Numbered from the stretch's first letter, positions 35,073 through 43,885 are shown. The stretch is DNA of 64,000 nt from IMGVR_UViG_3300042391_001376:140905-204904; one strand, 5' to 3'. Made by a program: numbers and translations. The notes: generated from the letters alone by a model not told the origin.

Positions 35073-35158
35073 GCCCAGGTGGCGGAACCGGTAGACGCAA
35101 GGGGCTTAAACCCCCTCGATTAGAAATGATCGTACGGGTTCGATCCCCGTCTTGGGCA
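35073..35158 (+). tRNA. tRNA-Leu(TAA)
   Basis: GCCCAGG/CTTGGGC, AGGGG-CTTAAAC-CCCCT, long variable arm. Confidence 0.95.
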
Positions 35159-35178
35159 CAAAAGAACAAAGGAACTCT

Positions 35179-36618
35179 ATGCGGAATAAGAGCCACTATC
35201 TAAAACTGTTGTTAACAACAGCATTAATGTTAACAGTTCTTGTTAACTCAAAAACTAATACAGCTAATGCTGGCGATGTTGCACCAGCTGTTTCAACTGT
35301 TAAGTTTTATCGTAAACTGACCAACTATTATTTGCCCAATTTATCATCTGCAGTCCCAAGAATGGGTGCAGATATAGCTTACAATAATAACTTCAGAGGA
35401 CAAGATTCCTTTATAGTTATTCTTGATACTGGCATTGAAGCTGTCCACTCATTCTTTGGTGGCAGAGTAGCACTTGAAGCTTGCTTCGCCGTCAAATGCC
35501 CCAATGGTCAAATATCTATGGTTGGTTCTGGTGCAGCAGCCCCAATTCATTGGCACGGTACCCATGTTGCAGGCATTGCCGCTGGACTTAACTCATCTAT
35601 TAGAGGTATAGCACCAAGCGCAAAGATCATTGCAGTAAATGTTTTTGCTGCAGATGGTTCTGCTTCAGACTCTGATCTTATTCGCGCATTACAATGGGTT
35701 GATTCTATATCTGATCAATATAATATTGCGGCTGTCAACATGTCTCTTGGTACACCAGGAACATTTAAATCTTCATGCAACTCTTATATACCAGATTTAA
35801 CTTCAATTATTTCTACATTGAAGTCTAAAAATATTGCTACTGTAGTTTCAGCCGGCAACGAAGGCCAGCGTGGAATGAGTTCCCCAGCATGCATTACAGA
35901 CACTGTCAGTGTTGCCGCAACTTACACTGCTGGAGACGGCAGTGACAGAGTTACTAGCTTTAGCAACGTTAATGAATTAACTGATTTATCAGCTCCTGGA
36001 TACAACATAGTGTCTTCCAAACTTATGGGTGCATATGGTGCATCTTCAGGAACATCTATGTCAGCACCTATGGTTGCTGGCGCATTTGCAGTATACCGTT
36101 CTAAGTTTGGCGTACAATCAGTAGATAAAGTAGTATCTGACTTTCAATCTACTGGAATCAACGCAGTAGATGATTACACCAAAATTGTTACAAAAAGAAT
36201 AGATTTTAGATCCCTGTTTTCAACACCTGGATCTACACCCCCACCACCCACCACAACTATTCCCTCACCAACTACAACAACTCCATCACCTACTACCACC
36301 GTACTTGATGAAGATGATGAATCAGAAGACTATTTAAATATTCCTTACATTATAACTTTGAAAAAGTTTGCAACTAGACTATCTTATATTCGATTAGACT
36401 TTACATACAGATATACAAATATACCTGTGTCTAATTTTATTTTAAGGTGCAGATATGCAGACAATAAAATTGTTGATAAAGTTATTAGCAATAGAAACAG
36501 AACAACTAATTCTTACTTTATATCAATATCTTCATTAAATATTCGCTCATGTAGAATGGCCGCAGTATCAACAGATGGTACTGTCGGTCAATTCTCCAAA
36601 TACATATTGGTGAAATAA
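35179..36618 (+). CDS. secreted S8 (subtilisin-like) serine protease
   Basis: LDTG, HGTHVAG, SAGN, GTSMSAP; signal peptide; P/T linker; start moved downstream of the tRNA. Confidence 0.95.
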   Translation: MRNKSHYLKLLLTTALMLTVLVNSKTNTANAGDVAPAVSTVKFYRKLTNYYLPNLSSAVPRMGADIAYNNNFRGQDSFIVILDTGIEAVHSFFGGRVALEACFAVKCPNGQISMVGSGAAAPIHWHGTHVAGIAAGLNSSIRGIAPSAKIIAVNVFAADGSASDSDLIRALQWVDSISDQYNIAAVNMSLGTPGTFKSSCNSYIPDLTSIISTLKSKNIATVVSAGNEGQRGMSSPACITDTVSVAATYTAGDGSDRVTSFSNVNELTDLSAPGYNIVSSKLMGAYGASSGTSMSAPMVAGAFAVYRSKFGVQSVDKVVSDFQSTGINAVDDYTKIVTKRIDFRSLFSTPGSTPPPPTTTIPSPTTTTPSPTTTVLDEDDESEDYLNIPYIITLKKFATRLSYIRLDFTYRYTNIPVSNFILRCRYADNKIVDKVISNRNRTTNSYFISISSLNIRSCRMAAVSTDGTVGQFSKYILVK

Positions 36619-40102: not shown

Positions 40103-40175
<73 letters not shown>

Positions 40176-42220: not shown

Positions 42221-42296
42221 AGGGCGGTATACCCTCACTCTTATAAAGTGTTGAAAGGTTAGTTGGTCCACGTGGGTTCAATCCCCACCCGCCCTA
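42221..42296 (+). tRNA. non-canonical tRNA-like RNA with TAT (Ile) anticodon, no D-arm, 20-nt variable region
   Basis: AGGGCGG/CCGCCCT acceptor, CACT-CTTATAA-AGTG, GTGGG-TTCAATC-CCCAC. Confidence 0.8.
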
Positions 42297-42312
42297 CTAG
42301 TCAGGCATCAAA

Positions 42313-42645
42313 ATGTTAATAGAACGAAAGCCCTGGATGCAGGAATCTTCTTGTAATGAAGAAGATACAATTGTATTTTTCCCTAACAGATATACTGAAG
42401 CTACAGTGGCTAAGCCATTTTCTCTATGCGACACATGTTTAGTTAAAGCCGACTGTCTTTACGAGGCAATGATTACTGATTCTGTTGGCATATGGGGCGG
42501 AACAACCGAATACCAACGACTCATGCTTTTATCTAAATTATTTAATGATAACTCAAAAAATGTTAACATGAAAGCAATTATTAAGATAATAGAAAACAAC
42601 TACTACTCAATACCAATTTCATCTAGATATGAACAAAAATATTAA
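42313..42645 (+). CDS. whiB: WhiB-family transcription factor
   Basis: W...SSC...FFP...CDTCLVKADC...GIWGG. Confidence 0.9.
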   Translation: MLIERKPWMQESSCNEEDTIVFFPNRYTEATVAKPFSLCDTCLVKADCLYEAMITDSVGIWGGTTEYQRLMLLSKLFNDNSKNVNMKAIIKIIENNYYSIPISSRYEQKY

Positions 42646-42686: not shown

Positions 42687-43430
42687 ATGACAAACGAAGC
42701 TTTCTCCAACGATGATGACCTGTTTTCTTACGACCCTTCGCAAGAACCAGTAATTGATAAATCAGATTTTTCTGCTAGTGCCTCAGGCAAAGTTAATTCT
42801 GACATATTAGAAGACATATCTAAACGGATAGATGGCGCAAAGGATGATGATATCCTTGGATCTTTTAGTATGAAAATAAGATTTGCTCAATCCTTCATTG
42901 AATCATATACTTATTTCATTCAAACTAGTAACACCTTTTTCCATAGAGCTGTACACCAAACTTTAGATCAATTAACTTCTGGTAGATTCTCTATGATATA
43001 CATGTTTAATCATTTAGAGCATAACTTGTTGCGCCGGCTAAATGTTAAGTATATCTTAGAGAATACTTTTTTAGATACCGGTGAACCATCTTCTGAAGAT
43101 TTTCAAACATTTCTTAAAAGAGTTGGTTTAGATTTAGATGAAACTTTTATTGGTTGCTATATTCAAAGTAATATAGATATCAACAATCATGTCATTAATA
43201 ACGAACGGTCTTTGTACATGGAACTAGCAGAACGCTTAGACTTAAACCCACACCACGTCATTGCTAATTCAAATCCAACACTAGACGATTTGGTAGGGTC
43301 TCTTCCAACTTCTGTAGACAGATATCATCAAGAAATGTATGAAGCCATGTTCGCTTCATTAGCTGATTCTGGGTATACAGATAAACTTTCTGATCTTTAT
43401 TCTGACAAAGTTAGGCTATCTCAAATATGA
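42687..43430 (+). CDS. hypothetical protein
   Basis: 247-aa ORF. Confidence 0.7.
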   Translation: MTNEAFSNDDDLFSYDPSQEPVIDKSDFSASASGKVNSDILEDISKRIDGAKDDDILGSFSMKIRFAQSFIESYTYFIQTSNTFFHRAVHQTLDQLTSGRFSMIYMFNHLEHNLLRRLNVKYILENTFLDTGEPSSEDFQTFLKRVGLDLDETFIGCYIQSNIDINNHVINNERSLYMELAERLDLNPHHVIANSNPTLDDLVGSLPTSVDRYHQEMYEAMFASLADSGYTDKLSDLYSDKVRLSQI

Positions 43431-43885
43431 GCAAAAAGCATTTAAAACAATTTTTACTGTCCGTGGCTACAGCTTCTGCTGTTGCTGCAATAAACTATAC
43501 TATATTTCATAGTCATTTTGTTTTTGTAGTATTAATGGTTTTAATTGCTCACGAACTTGGTCACTATATAACAGCAAGAATGAATGGCGCTAAAGCAGAT
43601 CTTCCATACTTTATCCCATTTCCAATAATTTCTATTGGCATAACACATATTAAGAATATGAAGTTTCTTTCTAAATCTACTAGAAAGAAAATATTGGCTT
43701 ATGGTCCCATAACTGGATTCATTACAGCTTTTTATTTTTTATTATTATCACTTCTCTTTTCATCACTCCCATCAGCTCCACTTTTATTTATTTGTTTTTC
43801 TGAATTGGTATTTAATTATTTTGGTTCTGATGGTAAAAAATATCGTCAAATAAAAGAACAGGAATTATCTTTATGTATTTCATAA
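43427..43885 (+). CDS. M50/site-2-type intramembrane metalloprotease-like protein
   Basis: HELGH in a TM helix, YGP, GSDG. Confidence 0.78.
   Translation: MSKKHLKQFLLSVATASAVAAINYTIFHSHFVFVVLMVLIAHELGHYITARMNGAKADLPYFIPFPIISIGITHIKNMKFLSKSTRKKILAYGPITGFITAFYFLLLSLLFSSLPSAPLLFICFSELVFNYFGSDGKKYRQIKEQELSLCIS

Follow-up and report, generated by a model that had tools for sequence, protein, structure and literature searches.

The element at 42221-42296 is likely a functional phage tRNA-Ile(UAU) that reads AUA and whose backbone runs through the tRNA in a noncanonical order; we put the probability of this reading at roughly 0.65, with charging, CCA addition and decoding all inferred. It lies in a 64,000-nt stretch of DNA, the whole of which was analysed and is hereafter called the window. 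Much firmer, and in our judgement close to certain, is that the element belongs to a conserved family of structured RNAs of the tRNA class in which the D segment has been relocated. In the proposed arrangement nt 10-21 (the 5' strand of the D-stem and the D-loop) would have left their place between nt 9 and 22 and entered the variable region, so that the segments would follow each other as acceptor, U8-A9, [22-25], 26, anticodon arm (27-43), U44-G45-AAA, [10-13], [14-21], Y48, T-arm, acceptor and A73. The order of the cloverleaf segments is among the most constant features in biology, and its known exceptions lose arms, in mitochondria for instance, or change stem lengths. What seems to be new here is a tRNA with a new topology, spread across phage lineages, left unannotated and, in our scans, found almost entirely on phage or viral contigs.

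The acceptor stem and the anticodon stem were separated by a spacer of only 8 nt, TATACCC(T), and the D hairpin that belongs between nt 9 and 26 was absent (Table 1). The 20-nt stretch before the T-arm, TGAAAGGTTAGTTGGTCCAC (42252-42271), included AGTTGGTC. In the geometry that we propose, ACC (42231-42233) stands in for canonical nt 23-25. No CCA was present in the gene sequence at the 3' end of the element. The T-arm was identical to that of a canonical tRNA with anticodon CAT at 40103-40175 (+). The element was intergenic, with a short ORF upstream and a gene for a WhiB-family regulator downstream (42313-42645 (+); Pfam PF02467, E = 1.3e-12). G+C content was ~36-37% around the element and 32-46% across the window. 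From the WhiB gene, the G+C content and the freshwater origin of relatives, we take the window to come from a phage of freshwater Actinobacteria. Other genes near the element included an M50-peptidase-like ORF (43427-43885) and a subtilase (35152-36618).

Table 1. Parts of the rearranged tRNA-like gene, in window coordinates
Feature	Position	Strand	Remarks
Rearranged tRNA-like gene	42221-42296	+	76 nt
Acceptor stem, 5' strand, AGGGCGG (nt 1-7)	42221-42227	+	Partner 42289-42295
TAT: U8, A9 and the U facing U13	42228-42230	+	
ACC, 5' strand of the long-range D-stem equivalent	42231-42233	+	Partner 42257-42259
C26 and anticodon arm	42234-42251	+	U27.U43; 4-bp stem CACT/AGTG; loop CTTATAA
Anticodon stem-loop CACT-CTTATAA-AGTG	42236-42250	+	
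Anticodon TAT (UAU)	42242-42244	+	Loop: C32, U33, A37, A38
Linker UGAAA, from anticodon arm to 3' strand of the D-stem equivalent	42252-42256	+	Proposed U44, G45 and three A
GGT, 3' strand of the D-stem equivalent (position of nt 10-12), and U13	42257-42260	+	
D-loop-like segment AGTTGGTCCA, then C48 at 42271	42261-42271	+	A14, G15, G18-G19 at 42265-42266, U20, C-A
T-arm GTGGG-TTCAATC-CCCAC	42272-42288	+	5-bp stem, 7-nt loop
Acceptor stem, 3' strand CCGCCCT	42289-42295	+	Pairs with the 5' strand over all 7 bp
Discriminator A	42296	+	
Trailer C	42297	+	Conserved

On the window ARAGORN called seven canonical tRNAs (Arg-TCT, Leu-TAA, Asn-GTT, Lys-TTT, CAT, Thr-TGT and Gly-TCC), and the element was not among its calls. 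Nor was the element reported by a default Rfam scan at the gathering score. When the Rfam scan was run locally and permissively, RF00005 matched with 30.9 bits (gathering score 29), in an alignment that deleted the D-arm and placed a 17-nt insertion in the variable region; no family besides tRNA matched the element in that scan. A covariance model built from the homologues described below gave the element 91.7 bits (E ~4.5e-24), far beyond chance, and the canonical tRNAs of the window no more than 23.5 bits, the score of the CAT tRNA at 40103-40175, which was the best non-self match. This family model (R1) gave 85-92 bits for members and at most 24 bits for canonical tRNAs, with one copy per genome. 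Folded as a single sequence, the element was not unusually stable (z = -1.23). The original prediction, made without database searches, had described the acceptor stem, T-arm, anticodon arm, short linker, 20-nt stretch and 76-nt length, and all of these held on the + strand. It had also expected ARAGORN to miss the element or score it low, as was the case, and had noted the CAT tRNA at 40103, which is present and for which the choice between a Met type and an Ile2 (lysidine) type is undecided. Its statement that there is no D-arm was too strong, as a D-stem equivalent is present through long-range pairing around the anticodon arm.

No GenBank phage matched the region in a near-identity BLAST search. 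In distant mode BLAST found the element in 84 GenBank phage records, at 79-86% identity over the whole element; these comprised 82 Streptomyces phages (Stanwilliamsviridae, cluster BE), Rhodococcus phage Peregrin and the crAss-like Kehishuvirus tikkala, the last with a weaker match (78% identity over 69% of the query). The site carried no tRNA annotation in 80 of the 84 records. In Streptomyces phages the element was always flanked by genes for a nucleotidyltransferase and an FtsK-like protein, and in tikkala it occupied a gap in a tRNA array, with tRNA-Trp on one side and tRNA-Met on the other. With a WhiB gene next to the element in the window, no shared partner gene was apparent among these three settings. 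Viral contig L066 (205 kb) shared the flanks of the window.

A degenerate DNA pattern over the 3' half of the element matched 81 viral and at least 120 metagenome contigs, as well as 22 contigs of the genome collection. Only about four of the 22 were true family members, all on MAG contigs, one of which equals a 363-kb jumbo-phage contig of IMG/VR in length (L109 and L021), and the genome-collection scan gave no evidence of a cellular home for the family. The first two DNA patterns run on viral contigs were discarded, having returned no match and a single chance match (L010), respectively. Stem checks and parsing left 199 instances, corresponding to 126 distinct sequences. Because the search pattern imposed UGAAAG, UA, GGU and GGGUUCRA on the pattern-found set, part of the invariance of that set is built in; the UGAAA linker was also conserved in the BLAST-found homologues, which were free of any pattern constraint. 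The family spanned phages of unrelated host phyla, Actinobacteria and Bacteroides, and also occurred in lytic phage groups. Conservation stopped exactly at the borders of the element, beyond which the flanks diverged. Three relatives (L023, L061 and L196) had only 4/7 acceptor pairs in an otherwise intact core, and are possibly decaying copies.

Covariation was evaluated in an alignment of 80 representatives sharing <88% identity. Paired bases filled 96.2% of the cells in which pairing was expected, compared with 65.2% after shuffling, and the covariation score was 0.783 compared with 0.177 for shuffled alignments (0/500 reached 0.783) and 0.10-0.16 when the partners were slid. Compensatory changes were found in all seven acceptor pairs and in all four anticodon-stem pairs, and the T-stem was paired in 97.8% of cells, in a pattern-found set that had been selected for GGGTTCRA. 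The decisive helix is the one of 3 bp between ACC (42231-42233) and GGT (42257-42259), which was paired in 100% of cells, with compensatory changes in two of its three pairs. RNAalifold independently returned the same four helices, the ACC/GGT helix included. Among all 126 sequences the D-stem equivalent was Watson-Crick paired in 124, through six combinations: CCC/GGG in 54, CUC/GAG in 27, ACC/GGU in 23, CGC/GCG and CAC/GUG in 7 each, and UCC/GGA in 6. The second GGT (G18-G19-U20) was rejected as an alternative partner for ACC, since 66.7% of cells were paired in that register and compensation was absent. G.U pairs were frequent on the + strand, which fits an RNA read from that strand.

The signature of the tRNA core was retained outside the helices as well. 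The purine following the U-A that comes after the helix and the base preceding the T-stem covary in the manner of the 15:48 Levitt pair (A:U in 70 sequences, G:C in 37, G:G in 15 and other in 4; n=126), and the D-loop-like string keeps A14, R15, G18 and G19. Several conserved positions were not forced by the search: U8-A9-U was found in 123/126 and C26-U27 in 125/126 although both lie outside the pattern, and the C-A dinucleotide before position 48, likewise unforced, was found in 126/126. At the level of sequence, the bases for the tertiary contacts of a tRNA core (U8-A14, R15-Y48, and G18-G19 to the T-loop) are in place; the three-dimensional fold that they would support is inferred.

Members of the family carried only NAU anticodons (UAU 79, GAU 37, CAU 10; n=126), in which the wobble base varied between U, G and C and A35-U36 was fixed. 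The anticodon loop was canonical, with C32, U33 and A37 in all but one of the 126 sequences, and the discriminator was A in 126/126. Other tRNAs were encoded in 125 of 149 distinct loci, in 97 of them within 300 nt of the element. A canonical tRNA-Ile occurred in the same locus in 35 cases, with the same anticodon in only 7. The near-complete tRNA set of tikkala, for example, includes a canonical Ile(UAU), and the rearranged gene supplies GAU. Streptomyces phage Evy has canonical tRNA-Ile for both AUC and AUA, and its rearranged GAU copy is redundant.

No canonical GAU or UAU tRNA-Ile was found in the window, whose canonical tRNAs read AGA, UUA, AAA, ACA and GGA. Codon usage, counted in window ORFs of at least 200 aa, leaned heavily on A-ending codons, with AGA making up 46% of Arg, UUA 32% of Leu and ACA 37% of Thr codons; AUA made up 36% of Ile codons (287/798). 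Given this A-ending tRNA set and the share of AUA, a UAU tRNA fits the repertoire of the window.

These comparisons bear on the remaining claims of the original prediction. It would have been refuted by an absence of homologues with covariation, and such homologues were found; its central idea, an internally rearranged tRNA with the elbow rebuilt from the 3' side, is supported by the comparative data. The pairing between ACC and GGT that it put forward held, but only with the first GGT (42257-42259). It had left open whether the RNA reads AUA or acts as a decoy, and here the genomic context favours a decoding tRNA, although this function is inferred and neither alternative has been demonstrated.

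The base after the discriminator was almost always C in the family, followed by AA, TA, TT or CA. The 791 canonical tRNAs of the same loci shared this trailer profile (C74 in 95%; order CAA > CCA > CTA > CTT). This common profile suggests, indirectly, a 3' maturation route shared by the family and canonical tRNAs. Part of the element was present in 24 RNA-library runs. Each of the four runs examined gave one low-depth contig, the element-bearing ones at 2-3x. Three of these contigs (X6, X7 and X9) were relatives that matched to 42221 or 42190 on the left and to 42297-42299 on the right and then diverged, and the fourth (X8) lay upstream of the element, off it. The RNA contigs ran into the flanks, and it is possible that they represent precursor RNA, or else DNA carry-over. 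Their divergence at the borders shows selection on exactly the stretch of the element, not processing. Nothing in the four metatranscriptome runs examined directly demonstrates a mature RNA, an added CCA or charging.

The proposed model explains how a full tRNA shape may be reached despite the changed connectivity. The ACC/GGU helix encloses the anticodon arm and could stack on it like a normal D-stem, the A14-R15-..-G18-G19 string could reach the T-loop, and R15 would pair with Y48, so that the L-shape, the distance from anticodon to acceptor and the elbow would all be rebuilt from a different strand order. Since the ACC strand leads directly into the 5' half of the anticodon stem, stacking of the two helices would put this strand at the position of nt 22-25. 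The 3' strand of the helix would then head to the elbow, continuing into A14-R15 as nt 13 normally does. Counting 4 bp, U.U, the internal loop, 3 bp and U13.U22, the stack would comprise about ten layers, the normal number for a tRNA. Judged by the known structure of yeast tRNA-Phe, the residues that the new junctions 9-22, 45-10 (via AAA) and 21-48 would connect lie in adjacent tertiary layers. The three-dimensional model is reasoning from known tRNA structure and was not computed. Processing by RNase P, 3' maturation with CCA addition, charging by the host IleRS and decoding of AUA on the ribosome are likewise inferred.

ARAGORN called none of the 126 native family sequences, either in its default or in its mitochondrial mode. 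After segment 10-21 had been moved back in silico, it called all 126 (Ile 115, Met-CAU 10, other 1), compared with 28/126 when the moved segment was letter-reversed as a control. This result agrees with the model but can lend it only limited support, as spacing alone explains part of the effect.

The layout was not restricted to the main family. A structure descriptor without the sequence motifs of the family, run on the collected loci, picked out 130 distinct rearranged tRNAs, whereas controls with reversed sequence yielded none. The 130 fell into the main family and two further groups. The first was a longer Ile subclass of 80-82 nt with UAU or GAU anticodons (L128:1223-1302 (+); also L054, L164, L206, L207 and L127), in which the moved segment directly followed the anticodon arm and a TGAAAAY-like stretch preceded the T-arm, suggesting an insertion point that differs from that of the main family. 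In the un-permutation test, control and test gave the same result for this subclass together with the Arg types described next (25/25 each), and the test carries no weight there. The second group comprised Arg types with anticodons UCU (6) and single cases of CCU, UCG and ACG, exemplified by L075:2084-2163 (+) and L128:2592-2672 (+), with more in L085, L074, L031 and L255-L336. These had a TAA linker after the anticodon arm and TAATTGGA, in which position 20 is A, and the tail leading up to the T-arm was longer. A further scan added ~13 distinct Arg-UCU sequences; most Arg-type matches to the DNA pattern were chance hits in AT-rich coding sequence, including giant-virus contigs, and were set aside, leaving the ~13 as real. 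In this Arg-UCU set the 3-bp long-range helix covaried (five combinations), 15:48 was A:U in 12/13, and an A followed G18-G19. One relative with the Ile-type scaffold had the anticodon ACG and GGA in place of GGU, that is, A20 for U20. In E. coli, A20 is the chief identity element for ArgRS. ARAGORN detected none of the Arg-type or longer Ile rearranged tRNAs.

A bolder reading would be that phages of many lineages carry a class of permuted working tRNAs, for at least Ile and Arg, that are charged, take part in translation and have been overlooked by annotation, and whose core may also evade host factors that recognise the D-arm. On present evidence we see the case for this wider claim as balanced, with no clear lean in either direction.

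The main rival to a decoding tRNA-Ile is a tRNA mimic acting outside translation, as a decoy or regulator that, for example, soaks up a tRNA-targeting nuclease or a tRNA-binding factor. In its favour are the redundancy with canonical tRNA-Ile(GAU) and (UAU) in Evy, the possibility that the odd core impairs recognition by some tRNA-handling proteins, and the fact that evidence of charging or CCA addition was not obtained. Against it, the wobble base changes on a fixed background of A35-U36, U33, A37 and A73, the anticodon usually complements that of the neighbouring canonical tRNA-Ile, and the rearranged gene fills the GAU slot in the array of tikkala. Occurrence in phages of unrelated host phyla fits a universal role in translation better than a host-specific target, and the Arg-type relatives keep A20. 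We therefore consider a mimic unlikely, and a working tRNA-Ile the better explanation.

Less likely still is that the rearrangement exists only in the DNA and the precursor, the RNA being cut and religated to a canonical tRNA in the manner of the red alga Cyanidioschyzon. As this idea would have it, the gene contains precisely the segments of a canonical tRNA, only reordered, and the un-permuted sequence is called tRNA-Ile by ARAGORN. Restoring the canonical order, however, would need the transposition of a segment, with several cuts and ligations rather than one circularisation, and there were no conserved splicing motifs or extra flanking helices, conservation ending at the borders of the element. 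No pathway for such a transposition of RNA segments is known from bacteria. A decayed pseudo-tRNA or a chance tRNA-like string is also very unlikely and is contradicted by the covariation: the element is missed by standard tools and the acceptor stem is weak in a few of its relatives (L023, L061 and L196), but 126 distinct sequences from very different phages show compensatory changes in every helix, and conservation ends exactly at borders beyond which the flanks diverge. A site acting at the level of DNA, such as a tRNA-gene-derived attachment or recombination site, can be all but excluded. Integration often targets tRNA genes, but the pairing here is maintained by G.U pairs possible on one strand only, and the element, single in each genome, sits within tRNA arrays on the strand of the tRNAs themselves and also occurs in lytic phage groups.

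Set beside canonical tRNA-Ile, the phage family is alike in its 7-bp acceptor stem, discriminator A, TTCRA T-loop, 7-nt anticodon loop with U33 and A37, and NAU anticodon, in U8, A14, R15 and G18-G19, in its length of 76-78 nt, in its placement in phage tRNA arrays and in its trailer profile. It differs in that the D hairpin (nt 9-26) is absent, a 3-bp long-range helix is present and the D-loop lies directly before the T-arm. The D-arm-lacking mitochondrial tRNAs (tRNA-Ser(AGY) and the truncated tRNAs of nematodes and mites) also have no D hairpin in the usual place and a short connector between acceptor and anticodon, but they are shortened and have lost the elbow contacts between D-loop and T-loop (PMC7609411), whereas the phage family is of full length and keeps G18-G19, A14, R15:Y48 and a D-stem equivalent. 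At the level of sequence, the phage family has moved its D parts instead of losing them.

Circularly permuted tRNA genes are reported from Cyanidioschyzon merolae, in which the ends have reportedly been moved, with the 3' half placed ahead of the 5' half and the mature termini inside the gene, and the mature tRNA is canonical, and laboratory circular permutants of yeast tRNA-Phe reportedly indicate that the fold tolerates changed connectivity. The segment order of the Cyanidioschyzon genes departs from the cloverleaf, as here, but in the phage element the acceptor strands remain at both ends, the ends are normal and an internal segment is transposed, and the mature phage RNA would be expected to keep the rearranged order. 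Allo-tRNAs (8/4 or 9/3 tRNAs) were found by metagenome mining in phage tRNA clusters, some with UAU anticodons, and have altered acceptor and T-stem lengths, long variable arms and a D-arm in the normal position (PMC5389517). They resemble the phage family in being noncanonical, in occurring in phage tRNA clusters and, in some cases, in the UAU anticodon, and differ from it in having neither its 7/5 acceptor branch nor its relocated D segment. The YrlA Y-RNA-like RNAs of bacteria and phages and the tRNA-like structures of plant viruses mimic the acceptor/T-arm elbow with unusual topology; these mimics are parts of larger RNAs without a conserved decoding anticodon loop, which the phage element has. 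We found no description of the relocated-D layout in the full-text literature searched, which mostly excluded subscription journals, so that prior work cannot be ruled out; it was also absent from the review of non-canonical tRNAs (PMC7609411) and from the allo-tRNA paper (PMC5389517).

If the tRNA-Ile reading is correct, the L-shape can be reached through another topology, and the family would make it possible to test which features of the tRNA core are required by synthetases, EF-Tu, RNase P, the CCA-adding enzyme and the ribosome, and would offer a new scaffold for engineered orthogonal tRNAs. Some 80 deposited genomes of Streptomyces phages, and that of a crAss-like phage, lack annotation of these genes, and analyses of phage tRNA repertoires and codon supply are incomplete as a consequence. 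Several carriers are cultured (the Streptomyces cluster BE phages, Rhodococcus phage Peregrin and Kehishuvirus tikkala), which makes direct testing feasible.

Some further observations concern the carriers and their tRNA genes. A full CCA was encoded in only ~13% of the 791 canonical phage tRNAs (149 loci, L011-L233), CAA being the commonest trailer, and a C at the start of the trailer seems to mark the 3' side of these phage tRNA genes in general. Evy (L235; MK977711.1 82244-83893 and 97001-97267) encodes a Ro-like RNA-binding protein, a tmRNA and >30 tRNAs. In Streptomyces phage EGole (L001:1499-1575; MK494112.1 75265-75341) the homologue has been annotated, as a tRNA-Leu (codon UUA); its anticodon loop is CTGATAA, that is, GAU (Ile), despite that label, and ~80 sister genomes are unannotated at this site.
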